A DNA stretch of 63,160 nucleotides, filler included, from Choristocarpus tenellus KU-1152 (lineage: Eukaryota > Protista > Phaeophyceae): NCBI GenBank assembly GCA_964200185.2. It is 11 parts of 11 records of this genome, joined end to end, with 100 filler letters (N's around TTAATTAATTAA, not from the genome) between each part and the next. Parts side by side here need not be neighbours in the genome. Positions count along the whole stretch, not along the records: positions 48,277 to 56,882 come from CAXNAD020004536.1; 10 more parts are not named here. One strand, 5' to 3'. The position numbers and the translations under genes were made by a program. The notes below the pieces were generated by a model. That model ran no database searches. It was not told where the DNA came from and was given only the letters and a program-made list of their open reading frames with translations. This document shows positions 47,799 through 59,100 of the stretch, piece after piece (positions within the stretch are counted from its first letter, which is position 1; every line of letters starts with the position of its first letter).

Positions 47799-48663
47799 GT
47801 ACCCTAGGGAGAGGCGGATACTGTTTGGGAGAGGTGGGTGGTGTCACCCAAATGACTTTTTTTGCTGCTGGTTGTCTTGTTAAACTGCTTCTGTTTTCCA
47901 ACTTGAGTCTCTCTGTGTGTTTGTGTTTGTTTCTTGGCTACTCTGTCTCTCTGTCTGTATGTTTTATGTGATGTTGATCAATGTGATGATTTGATTGGTG
48001 ATTGTAGACTATACTTCACACGAAGCTGTTTCCTTTTATGTATACAATGTGTACTATGTATGCATGCACTTGTGGTGCCAATGGGTGTATGTGTGTGTAG
48101 GTGAGGGGGGGGGGGGGGGGGGGGGGAGGGGGGGGGAGACAAGGCGGAAGCCCCGGACCCCCCCCCACCTCATACCNNNNNNNNNNNNNNNNNNNNNNNN
48201 NNNNNNNNNNNNNNNNNNNNTTAATTAATTAANNNNNNNNNNNNNNNNNNNNNNNNNNNNNNNNNNNNNNNNNNNNAGTTCACCCCCCTACTGTGACCTG
48301 AATCTCCCCCTCCCTCCCCCCCCGCCTTTTTATTGACTTGCACTGATTATCATACTCTTGGGCACTCTCCTTTTGTTATCACTTTCCTTCACTGTGGCGA
48401 CTTGTTCCTAATTGTAACAGACAGAAAAATGCCTACAAAGGCTTCCTTTAACGGCCATACCCCCCCTGTTTCTTTCTTAGGTGTAACCTCCCATCTTTAA
48501 CAGTAGCCTTTTATTGACACCATTATCCCATATTTGTACACGGGGTGTTGTAGGCGGTATAGTTATTCATTTCCCTACCCCCCTGTTTATATTAGTTCAC
48601 CCTTCTTTATTCGCATATTTCTTTTATGTTCTCGTCCAGTCCATTTTTCTCCCAACTACTGCA

Positions 48664-48709
<46 letters not shown>

Positions 48710-49636
48710 CTTTTAACATACATCTACTGCCAATCCCCAATTCTTACTTTCGAGACGTTCACCCCACCTAAAATTCCCACCTAATGCATGTCCATCCGGG
48801 ACTCTGCCATTATCTGTACTTAATCTCGTAGCTGTGACTCAACCTAGAATCTCCACCTACCCTGTGGCCTCATTCAGTACTCTGGAATCCTATGTAGGTT
48901 TTCTTATTTGTTTTGTTTTCTATGCCACGTTATTTCCCAGTTTGTAGCTATAACCCATAAATTCTATTGCTACTCATAATGACGTAACCACTGATTCACA
49001 TGTAGCCTGTGCTTAGTAAACGTCCATCACTAACCTCTTAACTTCCACGCGTTATCCTTAAACGAAATGGGCCCCTCTACCTCCTCCTACAGTGAGCCCG
49101 CGCACCTGATTTTCTTTTTCTCTATTGGGTTAGGTTGAACGATGCAAGCAGCGGAAAACAAATCCACGTGATCCCACCGATCGATATAAACCTAGCATCA
49201 TTCCCAGCCCTATCGTTCGAGCGATATCTAAAATGAACTTACTCCACGATATTAGCGCATGCACACTACTCCGCCCCCGAACCATTAACTTTCCCCTTTT
49301 TATCGTGATTTCCATGGGCTAACCATGTTTGTGGCATAACCGGCACGGCACACTCTACTCCTACTTTCCGTCACCCTCTTGGACTGTAACTCTGGCAGGG
49401 CCCTCAACCCTTTCCCTTATTTCACTCCACCATTACGTCGTGGTCCATCTTTCGTACTTTTCTTGTCCTACGTATTTTTCCCGATACCCCTTGCATTATT
49501 ATGTCTGAATCTACCCACTTCACTACCCGTATTCCTTACCTACCTACCCTACACCTATCCACACTGTTATTCATCGTCTCATTCTTCAGCCCCCTCCCTT
49601 ACCTTGTCCACCTTTTCTTACCATTTCCGTATCCGC

Positions 49637-49852
49637 AAAAGAGCAGAGAAAGACAGATATGATAGGGAAGAAGCTGTTGAAAAACTACTGAAGAAAATCA
49701 GCGCTAATGCAAAAGCTGACAGCCTAATCTCAAATTATGGTTATAAGAAGTACCTAAATATCGATGGTAACAGCACAGTGACAGTAAATGAAGAGAAAAT
49801 CCAAGCAGCGGAGAAATGGGATGGCATACACGGTATTATCACTAATATCAAG
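49637..49852 (+). mobile_element. Fragment of a bacterial IS1634-family transposase
   Basis: KRAEKDRYDREEAVEKLLKKISANAKADSLISNYGYKKYLNIDGNSTVTVNEEKIQAAEKWDGIHGIITNIK matches the KRAxKDxxDRE...SNYGYKKYL...EKIxxxxxWDGxHGxITN pattern. Purine-rich block inside pyrimidine-rich flanks; CCGC on both sides. Confidence 0.82.
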
Positions 49853-50687
49853 CCGCTTCTCTAGCATCCCCACCCCTCCCCTCGGACCTTTCTCCCTTCC
49901 AGCTGTCGGAAAGATTGTTCGGGTTATGTCTTGATCCACTCCGGCGAGAAGCTTGCTCGGAGGTTGCCTTGGTCTCCTCCCCTCCTCGTCTTGTACCCCT
50001 GGTTTTCTTTCCCTCTTTTCACTGACTTGCTGCTGTCCTGCCACTCATTTCCATTAACCATCTCGTTCCTTCCTTGATTATTCCTTCTCTTCCTGCTTCT
50101 TTCTTTTTCTTTCCCCTCCCCCAAGCTTGTCCTGTGCCCCCCCCCCAACCAACCAGAATTCTTCCGCTCACAAAACTCAGATTACTTCATATACTCTCGC
50201 ATTAAAACGTGTCCTGCCGTTTTATCGTACTATGTCACTTATCTTGTGAAGTTGTACTATGCCAGAACTACTTAATCAAGTTATAAGAAATCGATCATCT
50301 GAGATTCGAACTCATTTCTTCAAACACACAATCACAAACCAATGACACTTGTTCCAGTTAGCGAACATTTCTGTTGTCTAGCTGTTATCACTAAATACCT
50401 ATAAACCATATAGACTATCAGCCTATATTGCACACACATATCCACACTCCCTAAACTTCCTCCCTTCACTCCATTTCTGCCAACAACTCTGCTCCTATAG
50501 CTTTTGCTTTGAGCTAGTAGGAGTGCATTGTCAAACATTTTAGAGCTGCCCACTTATGAGAATCCAATGCTATTTCAATATCCCACCCTTCTCCTAACAC
50601 ATGGCTGGTCCTCTTCAGTATTGCATGGTCTCTTGTTGAGATCATGGTTTGTTGTATCGTTTGTGATCTGAATCGTGTGTTCTACAG

Positions 50688-50831
50688 GATAACCTCTCTG
50701 GCCGGACACGGATCACTGTGCTGGCGACTGTCAGCCCTTCCGCAGGGACTCACAAAGACACCCTTAATACCCTTACATATGCTGAACGACTGTCCAGACC
50801 TCTGTCCTTGAAGGGCACAAAGGGCAAAATG
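50688..50831 (+). CDS. Kinesin motor domain, C-terminal exon
   Basis: DNLSGRTRITVLATVSPSAGTHKDTLNTLTYAERLSR corresponds to DSLGGNSxTxMIATxSP...ETLSTLxYAxR; AG/GT-bounded, 48 codons. Confidence 0.88.
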
Positions 50832-52247
50832 GTGAGTTAGATTTCACACCTGGAAATTATGTATGAGAACGAGTGAGATACTCTGCAAAATTTCATCTCT
50901 TGGAAGAAAGTAGAGGGCATGTCAGAAGAATGATTTTATTTTCCCGCATATCCTGGAGGAGATAGTTACTATGCTATGAGGAACATGTTGTTTGTTGGAG
51001 TATTCGTCCCTCCAAATGGATCAAATATGTGGTACTTCTGCTAACATTTCCGGACAGTTCATGGGAACTCCAGCAGACACAGTCATACAGGTGTGAAATG
51101 AGAACAACCTTCCCAGGCTGAACAGATCTCTACAACTCCAGGGTAGTTCTTAAATGTTTTGTCTGCACAGCTTCATTATTTCAACACTGCTCCACCCAGT
51201 AAGTACAGTACCCTCTCCATATTTACTGTGTTTCAGGAGAGATCTACTATTAGCTGGGATTATTGCCTTTTGATTTGGTCCTTGAGATTAAAGCAGGAAT
51301 ACATAGATAACGATATACTGAGGAGTAATGTGCTGCAGGCTATCACAACCCATACTCTGATAACCCTGGCCAGTTGCATGAAGTGCTTACAATTTCAATC
51401 CCAAAACCTTTATACATCCGACTTGCTTTGAAATTGTTTCGTAGTAGTAGATTCCAAATGAAGTCATGATTCCCATGGGGTAGAACGAGCGCGCCCTGTG
51501 AATCTTGCACTGGAACAATGCATGGAGAGGACCTTAGCGCCATTTGGGAGAAAGGTCGATCAAGTAGAAGTGCCCATAGATCAGAGGGGCAACGGGGGTG
51601 TTCCTCTCTCATTACATCTCATGATCCCCATGAACCACACGGGGAATGGCATCCTTGTGTCTGTAATATGCTGAGGGGCTGTCAAGCGAACAAAGTTTCA
51701 TTATCCTATTGGAAAATATTTGAGAAATGACCCACCTTCGAGATTTATTGCAGTGGAAAGAGCATACATACATATATACATACTCAGAGCCAGTTCATAT
51801 GAAAAATATACACGGCACATATATTTTCAGCAATTGTGGTTTTAGGGATACCCATTTAAATTATCTGTGTCTGCTACAACCTTTCCTTTGAGTTCCATGG
51901 TGCATACGGAATCTAGTTGTTGGCGATTGACTGGTATGTTGGTGAAGATAGGGATGGAATGCTGCTCTGGAGTATTGCGTACATACGGATGGGTGGCTTA
52001 AGAATGGTCTTGTTGTTCTCTGAGGTAAAGTTTCCAAGTGCCACCTTCCTCCTATAAACAACTTGAGGTGGGCTCATTTGGAGAATCTTAGTGCATTTGG
52101 CCCCCTCTTGGTACCATCTTTCAGGAACGCACGAAGTACCACAGAAGGTCTCCTGTACTGAAAATATATGAAGGAATCTAATCCAAACTTGCTCTTCCCT
52201 CACCCCTCTAGCCATCAAATTTCCTCAATTGCGTCTTGCCCTGAGCA

Positions 52248-55200
52248 GAGTCGATCGGATGTAACTCCACGCATCAGGAGTCTAATTGGTGAGCTGAGGG
52301 CAGGGAGCGATTGCACGAGCAGGGAGGCAAGTATTTCCTGCATCTTGAAGTATGTTGTGTGCGCACATTATCTTTGTCACAAAAATTGCTGAGATTGAAA
52401 AGTATCTAAATTGTACTCGATGAGAACCTGAAGCCAAAACGCGGTGCATACATGTACGCATAACCTTTCCCCACTCCCTCCTTGACACCGCCAAAAAAGG
52501 TCTTCCTTGCTGGCTTGAAAAGGTGCTATCAACATCTAGACCAAGATCCAGTACCGAAAACAGCACTGGAAATGCTGTTTTTCCTGCTAAAATCATTCCC
52601 ATTTCTACGAACCAGTCGGTTCTCCTGGCACACAAATGTCACCCCCCCAACAACGATGTTTCAGACCAGATCTCACTCAGTCTGAGGCTCTCCTTAGACC
52701 TATTAGGGTTGCTCGTCACATAGGGTCAGAGGTGATGCCATCATCCATGAGTCACAGGGAGGCGTTTCCCAAGGCCACATTACTGCTGTTGACATCATGT
52801 CCTGTGTCAGTAGCATTAACAGTGACTTCAACATAGTTCCTGCCACCAATGCCGCCCTCTACCTCATCTTCCTCGAGATTAACTGCACTCGCGATGATAT
52901 TGCTGGTGGTTCCATTACATCGATGTATCTCCCTTTGTCCACTTGTTGCACTTGAGTCCTTCCCACTTGTTTTGCAATACAAATCCATTCACAGATAATA
53001 TATATTCAGGGGACACATGATCCCTTATCAAAACACCCCCAACTCCCTCAGTGCTCTGTGCTGGCGCAGTGTTGACTGACTTTCCACTTCCAGGTCTGGG
53101 TACGGTGTGGGACCATTGGTTCTAGGGTTTGGCCAAGCTGCTGCTGAGGGTCAGTCACTATCAGGTGATGTACCTGGTTCAGAGAGTGGATTGCTTGTCA
53201 AGGAGGGGCGAGGTAGGGTTAGTTACTCTTCATATACCAGTGAGGTACACAAGTCCAACAAGCACAGAAACATGTATGTTTTGCCTAATAATGCGTGAGG
53301 GAAGCATGTGTGAGGAATCACAAAATCCACATTTGACATATGAGTGTGTGAATGAGGTAGAGGCAGATGTGCAGAATATTGTTTTTATTGTTACACGGAA
53401 ATTTCACACTCTTCCCAATTCGGTTAAGAGAAGAATACTTAAAGTTCTTTTATGGGGAGATGAAGAAACCAGAATAATGCAGGAAATCTAGAGTGTGGTG
53501 CCAATAGAACCACCGTGACAAGATTTTATCGGCACTGTTTCTCACATACTGCAAGATAACAAAGTCGAGTGGAATGCGGATGGGAGAGATCTGCGGTTTG
53601 AAGTCTAATTGGCGCGGCTGTGTAGTGACTGCCCTCTCCTCAAAAAACATAGACCTGACTCATGCAGTGGGAAGGAATAATTATTTTGTGCGTTAGAGGG
53701 CTAGGCGAAGGTGAAAGCTTGGAGTTTGCTGTGAGGTTGGAGGCGTGTTCTGTCAGGAATGGTGAGGAAGGCAAAGATGTTCGAGCAGGATACTTGTGGA
53801 ATGAATATTTCAATAATACACAATTTGGAGTAGTATGTTACCCGGATCCCAGTGCAGGGAGACTCTGTGAGGTGTGCCATATTTTATCAACAGTTTTGAT
53901 TTTGTCTTGGGAAGTCTACCCTATTTTGGTATTTCAATAAAATTCTTGGAAATTGTTGTTTTCCATCTCAGATATGGTGTTTAGTGATGTAGTTTGGAAA
54001 ACAAGTCTTATTCCTAGAGCACTATGGGAGGACTGGAAATTCAACACAGGACATGCTGCAAAATAATCTGTTTGTCGCTGTTATATATTGTGATGTGTAC
54101 AGATACTTTGCTCTATGCACATCAAGCAATACAAAATTGGGGCCAGACGTTATACTGTAGACCTTTTATTTACCTTCCACTTCAGCTTTGTTATCTTGCA
54201 ATGTGTGAGAAACGGTTGGATCGAATATTGTGGCAGCGATCCTAATGGTACCACCCTCAAGTTTTTCCTGCTTTATTTTCTACCTCTGTTCATCATGTCC
54301 CTCTTTCACTACTTACCTGTTCACCGAACCAGGAAGAGTATTGACGCACATCTCTTTTTTTAACCCATTCACCTACTCGCATTTCAAATGTTGATGTTGT
54401 GATTCCTCTGTCGTGCTTGTTGGACTGCTGTAGCGGAGCAATATTTGATGAGAAACTAGCCCTCCTCACCCCTCCTTGGCAATGGTCCCCCACTCTCTGA
54501 ACATGGTGACTTGCCCCCAACAGTGTTTTGCAAAGCTTCCAAAACAACACCCCCATTTTGCCCAGACCTGGAAGTGGGGGGCCAGTCAACACTCCGCCAG
54601 CACAGACCGCTGGAGGGAGTAAGGGATTGTGGTATGAGATTATGTATCCTCTGTGTGAATGAATAGATGTGAATTAGAAAGCGGTGGAAATGACTTGAGT
54701 GCATCAAGTGTACAAAGGGAGACACATGACAATAATAGAACTATTTCCACTACCATGAATATCAAAGCTTAACTTCAAGGAAGATGACACATAGAGAGCA
54801 GTCATTGCAGCATTTGTGGCAAGAGCTACAATGAAGTCATTGTTGACTAGTGACACAGGAGGTGTAAACAGCAGTGATGTACCAAGCGGAAGTATCCTGG
54901 AGGGTACGAGTTTGCCCTGTTTGTCCATTTGGGGCTTGGCTTCCCTCGGGTATATTTTGACAGTTTACGTGCTCCGAAAAGTCTTGGAGTGTCCGAAACA
55001 AGGATATTGACATCTCCAAACAAACACGATAGCAAAAATTACATCAAAACTACAACATTGGATTTTGACCCCCAAATGGACGTGGCTATACCCTGCTAGA
55101 TACTTTGTCTCATAGGCTGCTGTGCATCTGGATGTCCCTTTACCCTTCCCAATCGAACTGACCCGTTCAATACTATTTAAATAGGAGCGCTTGTACTATT

Positions 55201-56111
55201 CCTGCAGTTTCGTGACAGTCTCGAATGTGTCGTCGACATTTCATCCTTGGCAGTTTAAGGTGGGCATTGGATAAAGAACAGCTACGGCCAAGCTTGTTCT
55301 GTTCTGTCCCCCACCAAACACCCTACCCTCTATTCCTCTCTGGGTTTGTTTTGCAAAGGTAGGGCAGTTGGAGAAGCTGAATAGGCGGTCCATTGAGGCG
55401 AACAAAAGGCTAGAGAAGTATAATCAACAGGAGAAGAGGATCCAGGGTGAGAGGAACAAGGGCATATATGTACTCTCTATTTATCCATGTTCCCATATAT
55501 CACGCAAACGCTCATATGAACGTGTGTACTTATAGGCAATGTCACATAGGCAAGATAGTGCAGTGCCCTCAACACCTGCGGCATGCCTCAAAGTATGTAT
55601 CATGCACCCTTGGCATGCGTACCCTGCCCTCACTCAGACTACTGTGTTTGCTGTGTTTAGGTGGTGGAGTGAAGCAATCCACTACTACTCTGCCTTGAAG
55701 TTCAGTTGGCTGAGTACTTTGCAATACCCTGCAATTTCTGGCAGGTGATGAATAGAGTTGTATCTGTCCCTCACACAAGGCACCACTGTATGCACTGTTT
55801 GTTGACTTCTTCCCCTTCTCACAGAAGCAGCATTCAAGGGAAAGGTGGCAAGGCTCCGTGCTGAATGTAACAGGGTACGTGACAGGTTGTGTTCGAAGCC
55901 GCAACTTGAAAGCTTTTGGTTGTCTGTGTTTTTCTATTGATACTCCGGAGTATGTACACCAAGAGGGGAGGCTAGATTGTTGTGCTTTGCCGTGTGACGA
56001 GTGACCAAGTCCATGGGTTCGTACTAGCACGAGCTACTTCAACAACACCAATGTTCGCTATGGAAGTATGTACTCCACAGGCAGATTATATCTAAAACTC
56101 AAGAACTTCAG
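52248..56111 (+). CDS. Probable downstream kinesin exons (about 52248-52326, 53094-53211, 55359-55446, 56034-56111); structure incomplete
   Basis: AG-bounded open segments, e.g. coiled-coil-like VGQLEKLNRRSIEANKRLEKYNQQEKRIQ. The joins could not all be resolved. Confidence 0.4.
54884..55111. mobile_element. MITE family A, full copy
   Basis: AAGCGGAAGTATCCTGGAGGGTA / TACCCTGCTAGATACTTTGTCTC. Confidence 0.88.
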
Positions 56112-59100
56112 GTCAGTATTTCGAAGGGCTAGATGCGTAGTATAGTGTACACTAACAGGTTTTCCCTAGCCCTCTCAACACAGAAACGGTGCTTGAGCTG
56201 ATATGTGACCTGGTTGGTGTTGGTGCTTTGAATGAGCATGTTTAAAGCAGAGAGACAGTTGAACACCCTTTTATCGTCCTGTATCTTCCATAAATCCTCG
56301 GGACAGAAAGTTGTACTTCGCACAGATTGTGGATTACATAGTTTGAAGTTCTTCAGAGCATTCACCAATGGACCTGAGGATCTTTGTGCGATGGTGAGAG
56401 TGTGTTGGGTGCAATTGATCATCACACACACATTTTAAGGTCTGACTATTGAGGAAGATCTCGTTGATGTTCCAATCTTGTTACCATTTGAATACCTGAG
56501 AACATTTCGCATCTTTGGAGGGTCTTGGACCATGCCCAGATTGAAGGTGTAGGGGACATGCCCACGCATTTACACCAAAAATAGAACGACCAAAATGTTG
56601 TATCGATCCAGGACGATAAATACATCCCCCCTCCCTCGTACGATATTTTGGTTCCTTATGCAGGGATTTCTCACCTCCGATGGTGTCGCATTCTTCCCCC
56701 CCACCCCCCCCTTTTGGGAATATACACATATAATACTCTATTGTGTACTACAGTGTATAACCAATATTTCCCTGAGGAATATTACTGAGAACCTTAAAGG
56801 AAGAGGTGACCATTTGGCCGTCCAGTTTAACCATTATTTCTGAGGTGGAGGGTGTTGAAACAGAGGTAAATCCCTGAGCTACNNNNNNNNNNNNNNNNNN
56901 NNNNNNNNNNNNNNNNNNNNNNNNNNTTAATTAATTAANNNNNNNNNNNNNNNNNNNNNNNNNNNNNNNNNNNNNNNNNNNNCCAGAAGCCAACCCAGGT
57001 GGAACTAGAAAAAAAAAAAAATCCTATGTGTTAGGGTGAACAAGGAGTAATCTCTCCAGTTTGAAGAGAGGCGGTAGGACCTCCATACTCGCTCTATTCG
57101 CCTATAACAAATCAGCCAGCAGAAACATCGGAGTGGGTCATCGGATTTATGCAGACTCATTATTTCCTGAGTATGCTGCATCTTTGAAGAATGAATCAAT
57201 CTTCGACAAGGCTCTCCTTTGCCATTTTATTATGGAGGTGAAGGAGAGCATTACTGTCAAGAATATGCTTGAACTCTCGTGTGAAAGAAGATTAAGCAAG
57301 AGACTGTTAGTGGAGAGTAGGAAATATGAACGAGTTATAGAGAATAGCGGTAGAATGTTGACAAATGAATACCAATATAGGAATGATTTTATTTTGGAGA
57401 ACAGGAGGATATTCAGTTTGTTAATTGATACATGGAGACTAGTGTGTCGATGGACAACGAACGGACTAGTAATGAACATGGAAGGGGTTGATACTTGGAA
57501 TAGGTTGTTTGAACTAGTAACAATGGAATGGTAACGAGAATTACTGGTAGCAAGGATACCCATCCTTAATGGGTGAATTCATTCCTCCCTATTTTTTCTC
57601 TCCAGTTCACAACGATAGTCAACAACAGTTAAGCGTATAACAAGTCCTGGAAACATCAGCCTCTTATACATTCGTCTGAAAGTTGGGAACATTTGTTCAA
57701 TGATTAAGTGAAAGGCGAGGTTTTGAATGTCATTTTTTTTTGTGGCTTTCAACTGATGTCACTATAGTTGCCGCAGTCGAGTACTGCACTGCTACTACTC
57801 TCATCCTGGTAGTGGGGGACTTCATGGGTGGTGAGTACCACAATAGCCTCTCAATAGTGGTATATTTCCTGGGACACGCACCTCCTTCAGGTGCAGATAT
57901 CAAGCTTTTTTAGATCGGGAAGGTCAGTTTCATGTTGCGCCCTCCTTTCTTTGTAGTCAAGACCTTGAAGTACATAACACGGGAAACATTTCACTGTTGA
58001 TCATTTCCTCGATCCTACCATGTCAACAAGACATATTCCTGTCCGCTAAACACAAACACAAACAAATTGATTCCACCATCCATACCCACTCTATCTAGTT
58101 GTACCATTTGCAGATTCGTCAGATTGGCCCCTCTCCACAACTTCGTTGTTGGGAACAGGCCTTTGTGAGGAGTAGGAACTATCAACCTAGGTGGTGATGA
58201 CTGTGTATTTGATGTGTCGTTAACAATGCTGTTTTTGTCACTCCTATTTTCACTGTTGCTACTACAGGTGGACTTCCACAACTTCATCCCTTTCACCTCT
58301 CAACACTCACAAAATTCAATTTATGGAAAGGGGTTGCTATATGGTGAGGGGGATGGGAGGCACTCACGAGCCAGAATCAAACGAGAGGTTTGCAGGTTTG
58401 GACCCTTCTGCATTCTAAGCCATCTTTCTCGCAGGTTTTACCCTGCGCAATAACATATTTTTTTTATGTGTGCAATAGTGTTGGCAAAATTGATATACCC
58501 CATTTTCACACACAAAGTATCACCATAATTCAGCAAAGAAGGTTCTTCCTGCACTTGTACAAAAAGTCGCCTTTACTGGAATCCTTAAAATTGAACCCTG
58601 TCTCCCTATTGGTTTGACTCTCATCAATCGTCACTCATCAAAATATTTGTAAAAAATTGATACTTGGTTGGATTAGAGTTGTACTTCAATTAGACAATTC
58701 CACTGTACTATGTAGTAGCGTGTTTTCAATTATAATTTTGAATTTTTCACATTAACGGTAACAAAATGTATGATGTATATAAAAAATTTCAATGTAGCGT
58801 AATGGGACCAGTCCATAAACATTATTAGTGTATTATTAAACCAGGTCCTATTACTGTCAGAGAAGTTTAAGAGGGTTGGACTGGATCCATCGAGATTGTA
58901 AATCAGACTGGGTAACTGATTGGGTTGGGTGGTGGATGGGGGTCGAAGAGATTGTATAGTGGACGGGACCATGGACTGGTAGGTGTAATCCAATACCCTT
59001 CGAAAATCTATACCTTAATATCAGGACGGGTTCTATCCCTCGAAAAAGCAAACGATTCCTGTGTATCTTGTTAGTATTACAGACGTTAAGATGTAGGTCA

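Follow-up and report, generated by a model that had tools for sequence, protein, structure and literature searches.

In the genome assembly of Choristocarpus tenellus KU-1152 (Phaeophyceae; GCA_964200185.2), one copy of a high-copy repeat is interrupted by 216 bases from the interior of a bacterial IS1634-family transposase gene. The insert lies in an 8.6-kb record (CAXNAD020004536.1), which occupies positions 48,277 to 56,882 of the window, that is, of the whole 63,160-nt stretch of DNA that was analysed, filler included; all host coordinates given here are those of the window. With a probability of roughly 0.6, the block arose recently in vivo, when part of a marine bacterial IS1634-family element was captured or copied into a break in the host repeat as NUMT-like filler. 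The sequence data show which fragment this is and how far it extends, the family of the donor, the empty site in paralogous repeat copies and the microhomology; we infer the occurrence in vivo, the passage through the germ line and the polymerase or ligase pathway. The features on which this reading is built are collected in Table 1.

Table 1. Features of the insertion locus, in window coordinates.
Feature	Position	Strand	Evidence
Left flank, one copy of a high-copy pyrimidine-rich host repeat	49250..49632	.	organism-A contigs, empty-site joint
Left junction, host/donor microhomology	49628..49636	+	donor context in 11 loci, blastn extends to 49628
Insert, internal piece of a bacterial IS1634-family transposase gene	49637..49852	+	NF033559, blastn, protein match, X1 contig
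Second CCGC, right junction, host sequence	49853..49856	+	X1 loose end behind 49852, donor loci
Right flank, same high-copy host repeat continued	49857..50250	.	depth table
Exon for the C-terminal end of the kinesin motor domain	about 50687-50830	+	PF00225, AG acceptor, GTGAGT donor

The block is a stop-free run of 216 bases between CCGC at 49633-49636 and CCGC at 49853-49856. Its translation is KRAEKDRYDRE...EKWDGIHGIITNIK (full reading KRAEKDRYDREEAVEKLLKKISANAKADSLISNYGYKKYLNIDGNSTVTVNEEKIQAAEKWDGIHGIITNIK), and excision of the block together with one CCGC leaves TTCCGTATCCGCTTCTC. The insert contains 37.5% GC and 66% purine, and the 400-nt flanks on each side contain 48-50% GC and 29-30% purine. 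The preliminary description of an A/G-rich, stop-free block of 216 bp, bounded by CCGC and set in a C/T-rich tract, is therefore accurate in both coordinates and composition.

The peptide encoded by the block matches the NCBIfam model NF033559 (IS1634 transposase) with an E-value of 2.6e-12 and 46.5 bits at model positions 289-366 of 483, the score falling under the 100-bit cut-off for whole proteins because just 72 residues are present. A HMMER search against 1.84 billion representative proteins returned 407 matches at E ≤ 1e-3, led by proteins of ~545-570 aa aligned at residues ~345-445, with shorter partial fragments among them. A protein-pattern scan of metagenome contigs led to L012, a contig of 2.15 kb whose full-length transposase shares 94% identity with the peptide, and a word search with this protein gave a cluster of 24 near-identical proteins of 551 aa (P0153 and its members; PF01609). 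These proteins share 68-69 of the 72 residues with the window peptide (69 in P0153 itself) and are encoded on contigs from several ENA, NCBI and Logan metagenome assemblies (L025-L034). Membership of the IS1634 family, which had earlier been proposed from the peptide pattern, is thus established by the NF033559 match and by the identity of 69 of 72 residues with full-length bacterial transposases.

Several other matches were set aside. Pfam analysis of the 77-aa peptide gave a meaningless match to CBP4 and nothing useful; the fragment falls within a poorly modelled insertion region of PF01609. The protein P0082, a repetitive Gly/Thr/Ala-rich bacterial surface-type protein of 5,236 aa, produced six matches to the 73-aa query (32% identity, one per 244-residue repeat), which are spurious and do not make it a relative of the transposase. 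A 142-aa IS1634 transposase fragment with 79% identity to the window peptide (P0179) is present at 8001-8429 of L035, a bacterial contig from long reads with a length of 34 kb and 1.98x coverage, in which SRP54, FolD and ZnuA are also in pieces; these gene breaks are probably sequencing-error frameshifts. P0179 has no bearing on the host.

Comparison of the metagenome contigs delimited a donor element of 1,900 bp with perfect 19-bp terminal inverted repeats (46-64 and 1927-1945 of L029). By its sequence this donor is an ordinary insertion sequence of bacterial type, complete and with a 551-aa transposase, and it is predicted to be functional. In blastn searches the block aligned with L012 and L025-L034 over 225 nt (IS positions 1230-1454), gapless and with 93.3-94.7% identity. 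The inserted bases themselves correspond in frame to transposase codons 356-427 of 551 (about nucleotides 1239-1454 of the element) and are placed after the second D and before the E of the DDE triad, containing neither. In the donor protein the candidate catalytic motifs, assigned by motif reading and not from a structure, are D ~209, D ~288 (VADSGL) and E ~445 (WQVEE), all outside the fragment. The block is alike to bacterial IS1634-family elements (IS4-like DDE; NF033559, PF01609) in its DNA identity of 93-100% to metagenome copies. Unlike an intact member of the family, it is restricted to this internal segment, with no inverted repeats and no catalytic D/D/E.

When the whole element was compared with the 8.6-kb piece as DNA, and the whole transposase by tblastn, the 225-nt block was the sole similarity, and a search of the window for the 19-bp inverted repeat of the donor (TCCTGACTTCGGAATAAAA) with up to three mismatches allowed found no copy. 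The fragment has neither terminal inverted repeats nor a start codon, nor the gene's own stop, nor any of the three DDE residues, and it is accordingly predicted to be inert, a passive piece rather than an element. This agrees with the original argument that an internal piece devoid of inverted repeats could not have transposed itself.

The donor element is found repeatedly in environmental DNA. Its copies (46-1945 of L029; also in L012 and L025-L034) are 95-100% identical and lie on contigs of ~2 kb from many metagenome assemblies; in L025, a Y1_Tnp (IS200/IS605-type) ORF is located immediately upstream of it. A blastn search of the block against plasmids gave no match, and tblastn against plasmids gave just 44-49% identity, to the IS1634 transposases of Persicobacter and Aliarcobacter. 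Against the GTDB species representatives, the best among the matches listed showed 60% amino acid identity and belonged to Melioribacteraceae MAGs, and an exact 30-mer of the block had no match in JGI metagenome contigs. A literature search by accession for the metagenome samples that carry the element gave no match. Small shares of the sampled 31-mers of the locus were present in metagenomes from a further 14 studies, among them cold seep, marine sediment, marine water, estuary, biofilm and soil.

The host side of the locus is eukaryotic. The kinesin exon, located 835 bp downstream of the insert on the same strand, matches PF00225 with an E-value of 8.3e-8 (model positions 287-324 of 327), and its splice sites, a ...tacag acceptor and a GTGAGT donor, were read from the sequence. 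An exon of this kind identifies the piece as eukaryotic nuclear DNA, and with a spliced kinesin exon downstream the insert is probably intronic, as had been suggested.

Both flanks belong to a repeat that is very abundant in the two organism-A runs available as Logan contigs (X19 and X20). Across 49250-50250, X19 contributed 408 contig pieces and X20 538, which are 90-99% alike; their summed depth ranges from hundreds to tens of thousands over the flanks and from 7 to 94 inside the block. Rfam and tRNA scans of the piece gave nothing by which the flanking repeat could be typed, and it carries no coding signal. At 50134-50201 the summed depth in the organism-A Logan contigs rises to 29,000-106,000, far above the remaining repeat, which marks this segment as either a short repeat or a low-complexity motif of very high abundance.

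An empty site, in which 49632 is joined directly to 49853 with 220 bases skipped and four bases ambiguous, is present in two contigs of X19 and three of X20, all of them paralogous copies of the repeat and not the orthologous or allelic site. The summed depths of this joint in the two runs are 1372 and 2320. The insertion was initially described as clean, and the exact empty site in other copies of the flanking repeat bears this out.

No host bases are missing at the insertion. At the left junction, host CGTATCCGC and donor CGTAGCCGC are identical at eight of nine bases (CGTAnCCGC), the terminal CCGC being perfect, and because of this match the blastn alignments reach nine bases into the apparent host flank. 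Ahead of AAGAGAGC the donor has ACTCGTAGCCGC (AGCCTC in some copies), where the host reads TTCCGTATCCGC. When host and donor sequence were paired at random in a simulation, at least eight of nine bases including the last four agreed in 1.25e-4 of the pairings, and the four terminal bases alone in 0.5%. The left junction thus reads as a microhomology junction common to the host repeat and the donor element. At the right junction, the donor continues with GACCAACC or GATCAACC and the window with CCGCTTCTC, and there is no homology between them.

A new observation is that the left CCGC is also present in the donor, inside the 8/9 match. The preliminary description was correct in placing CCGC on both sides of the block, but since the left copy falls within the donor match, these copies can be explained with no target duplication. 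The pair may represent either a 4-bp target duplication or a donor piece of 220 bp inserted with no duplication, two possibilities which are indistinguishable here.

The bacterial copies also provide information on the age of the insert. A 208-nt contig from a cold-seep metagenome (X1) is 100% identical to 49737-49852 (116 nt), and beyond 49852 it reads GATCAACCAGCTGCAGAGC..., which is downstream IS sequence. Between the window and the sampled full-length copies there are 15 differing positions, 12 of them synonymous, and the right-half differences of the window are all common to X1, which argues that they arose in bacteria under selection and not through decay in the host. At one position at least, 49680, no sampled bacterial copy agrees with the window, which has an A (Glu), and all of these copies, including those in X19 and X20 (C there), encode Ala; the base may have changed after the insertion or belong to a variant outside the sample. 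The proposal of a recent origin is strengthened by 116 nt of complete identity with bacterial DNA from the environment and by the mostly synonymous nature of the other differences.

These features suggest a break-repair event of the following kind. A break would have occurred next to CCGC in one copy of the high-copy repeat, inside an intron of the kinesin gene, and DNA of an associated marine bacterium would have been used for its repair. The host 3' end ...CGTATCCGC may have paired with CGTAGCCGC in the IS1634-family transposase gene, after which ~216 nt would have been copied from the bacterial template, or a fragment beginning there would have been ligated after annealing. The new end ...ATCAAG would then have been joined to the other break end with no homology, leaving no host loss and CCGC on both sides. 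Capture of filler in break repair had been put forward from the start, and it continues to be the best-fitting mechanism: the signatures of filler or NUMT-like insertion seen at the locus are the 8/9 microhomology on the left, the homology-free join on the right, the CCGC on both sides and the precise empty site.

A close parallel in junction structure is provided by NUMTs. According to part of the account by Hazkani-Covo & Covo (2008, PMC2567098), 54% of the NUMT insertions at chromosomal breaks occurred with no deletion, part of the junctions carried microhomology, and target duplications came from cohesive breaks. The combination of one microhomology junction and one homology-free junction with no deletion and a possible 4-base duplication fits this pattern of capture. 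Like NUMTs and NUPTs, the insert is a short and apparently non-functional piece of extrachromosomal DNA, acquired with no host loss through microhomology and blunt-type junctions and possibly accompanied by a duplication. Its donor, unlike theirs, is no organelle: the DNA comes from an insertion sequence carried by a marine bacterium, environmental or associated, and must therefore have entered the nucleus either from a symbiont or from the surroundings of the cell.

In synthesis-dependent microhomology-mediated end joining (SD-MMEJ) and repair by polymerase theta, synthesis starts from a 3' end annealed at a short and imperfect microhomology, another template is copied, and the extended end is joined to the other side of the break; foreign DNA can integrate by this pathway. 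Typical templated insertions made in this way are between a few and some tens of bases long, and their templates lie nearby in cis. The junction pattern of the insert, with its short imperfect microhomology as a putative priming site, also fits SD-MMEJ (Yu & McVey 2010, PMC2943611) and POLQ-dependent random integration of foreign DNA (PMC5508229). In contrast to typical templated insertions, the insert has 216 bases and comes from a foreign molecule, and the likeness is one of sequence.

Nuclear insertions of Wolbachia in arthropods and nematodes also place bacterial DNA, often fragmentary and non-functional, in chromosomes. For the integration of Agrobacterium T-DNA, filler and microhomology junctions are described in part of a further account (PMC8395108). 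The insert shares with these systems the presence in a eukaryotic chromosome of bacterial DNA that is fragmentary and probably non-functional, with end-joining-type junctions. It differs from them in being a very small fragment whose closest donor copies come from free environmental metagenomes, whereas the known cases have an intracellular germ-line symbiont or dedicated transfer machinery.

It is also conceivable, if rather unlikely, that the block is an artefact, in which bacterial DNA from the sample was joined to a host read or contig in the library, during amplification, in read correction or in assembly. This would be in line with the occurrence of the same insertion sequence as bacterial DNA in the organism-A runs, where contigs continue into IS sequence: one 165-nt contig per run is identical to 49746-49852 (0 mismatches, 107 nt) and runs 58 letters past the match into bacterial sequence, with no branch at 49852. 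Since these contigs do not stop at 49852, a host junction of comparable depth is absent from that assembly graph, which constitutes weak negative evidence on the host junction. All contigs listed over the insert in X19 and X20 begin inside the block or run off into non-window sequence, and none was listed across either junction in these Logan contigs, which contain 20-23% of the sampled locus words (roughly the insert and a few repeat words), perhaps do not come from the assembled individual, and drop rare variants of high-copy repeats. A raw-read run from a different organism (X21) had 0 reads on the locus. An artefact would also agree with the result that no junction-spanning ORFs were present in a collection of 5.8 billion proteins, with the size of the record, which at just 8.6 kb may rest on few reads, and with the left microhomology, given that template switching in vitro also uses microhomology.

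Yet beyond the insert the host sequence picks up again at precisely the next base, nothing being lost, so that an artefact would require two switches, the second of them with no guiding homology. Chimeras formed by ligation, PCR or MDA do not normally restore exact host continuity, and an imperfect match of nine bases should be far too short to lead a k-mer or overlap assembler astray. In addition, the A at 49680 distinguishes the insert from the bacterial copies that co-occur with it in the same runs. The donor as bacterial DNA in the organism-A runs fits a natural donor and a contaminant alike; its physical presence there means that donor and host DNA meet.

In another scenario, which we regard as improbable, a polymerase or reverse transcriptase switched templates in vivo while copying the repeat (during retrotransposition or by MMBIR/FoSTeS) and returned at CCGC. 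A return at CCGC or CGTAnCCGC would account for the duplicated CCGC and the exact resumption of the host sequence, and the flank is indeed a high-copy repeat and possibly a mobile element. However, the repeat has no reverse transcriptase, poly(A) or SINE head of the tRNA or Rfam type, the first jump would have taken place with no homology, and bacterial RNA or single-stranded DNA would have been required inside the replication or TPRT complex. On present data this course of events is indistinguishable from capture in break repair, and it was ranked below the latter because nothing marks the repeat as a retroelement.

Very little weight is left for a relic of a resident eukaryotic IS1634-like family or a larger bacterial segment reduced by deletions, for which nothing specific speaks beyond an IS1634-like coding sequence in a eukaryotic contig: similarity to the element in the 8.6-kb piece is confined to the one block and the terminal repeat is absent, the block has 93-100% DNA identity to bacterial copies with synonymous variation of the bacterial type, its depth in the organism-A runs is 100-fold below that of the flanks, the contigs listed over it in X19 and X20 never enter the host flank (the exact ones leaving at 49852), and the exact empty site is not expected from trimming by deletion. 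The undescribed eukaryotic IS1634-like lineage mentioned as an alternative in the preliminary description is consequently disfavoured by the single block, the missing inverted repeats, the low depth and the bacterial context of the contigs.

For capture in break repair, the more specific version, in which a eukaryote with ordinary spliceosomal genes very recently took up into its germ line a 216-base piece of an insertion sequence from a marine bacterium that lives on or in it, after priming at the 9-base near-match, is given slightly better than even odds. Read-level confirmation is needed before the insertion can carry weight. Events of this kind are already known, and the value of the present case would lie in its resolved junction and identifiable donor; the fragment itself, probably intronic and lacking the catalytic residues, is presumably functionless. 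If real, it provides a dated, junction-resolved entry of bacterial DNA into a eukaryotic chromosome by the break-repair route that generates NUMTs, with a donor still recognisable at 93-100% identity and an improbable microhomology that shows how the joint was primed. If the specific version is true, the flow of DNA from bacteria to a eukaryote would have been caught in the act, with its mechanism resolved and with no intracellular germ-line symbiont, and micro-insertions of this type would appear to be a regular but overlooked class that is routinely discarded as contamination. The debated transfer of bacterial genes to eukaryotes has its raw material in small, inert captures such as this one, which contamination filters usually remove. 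If the block is an artefact, it would still be useful, as a warning of how clean a chimera can look.

Two further features of the host piece were observed outside the insertion locus. A (TA)n microsatellite of ~20 units is located at 48668-48707. The segments 52894-53564 and 54186-54756 form five colinear inverted-repeat blocks with 73-90% complementarity, corresponding to a long imperfect foldback with arms of ~670 nt and a centre of ~620 nt, perhaps an inverted duplication, perhaps a foldback-type element.
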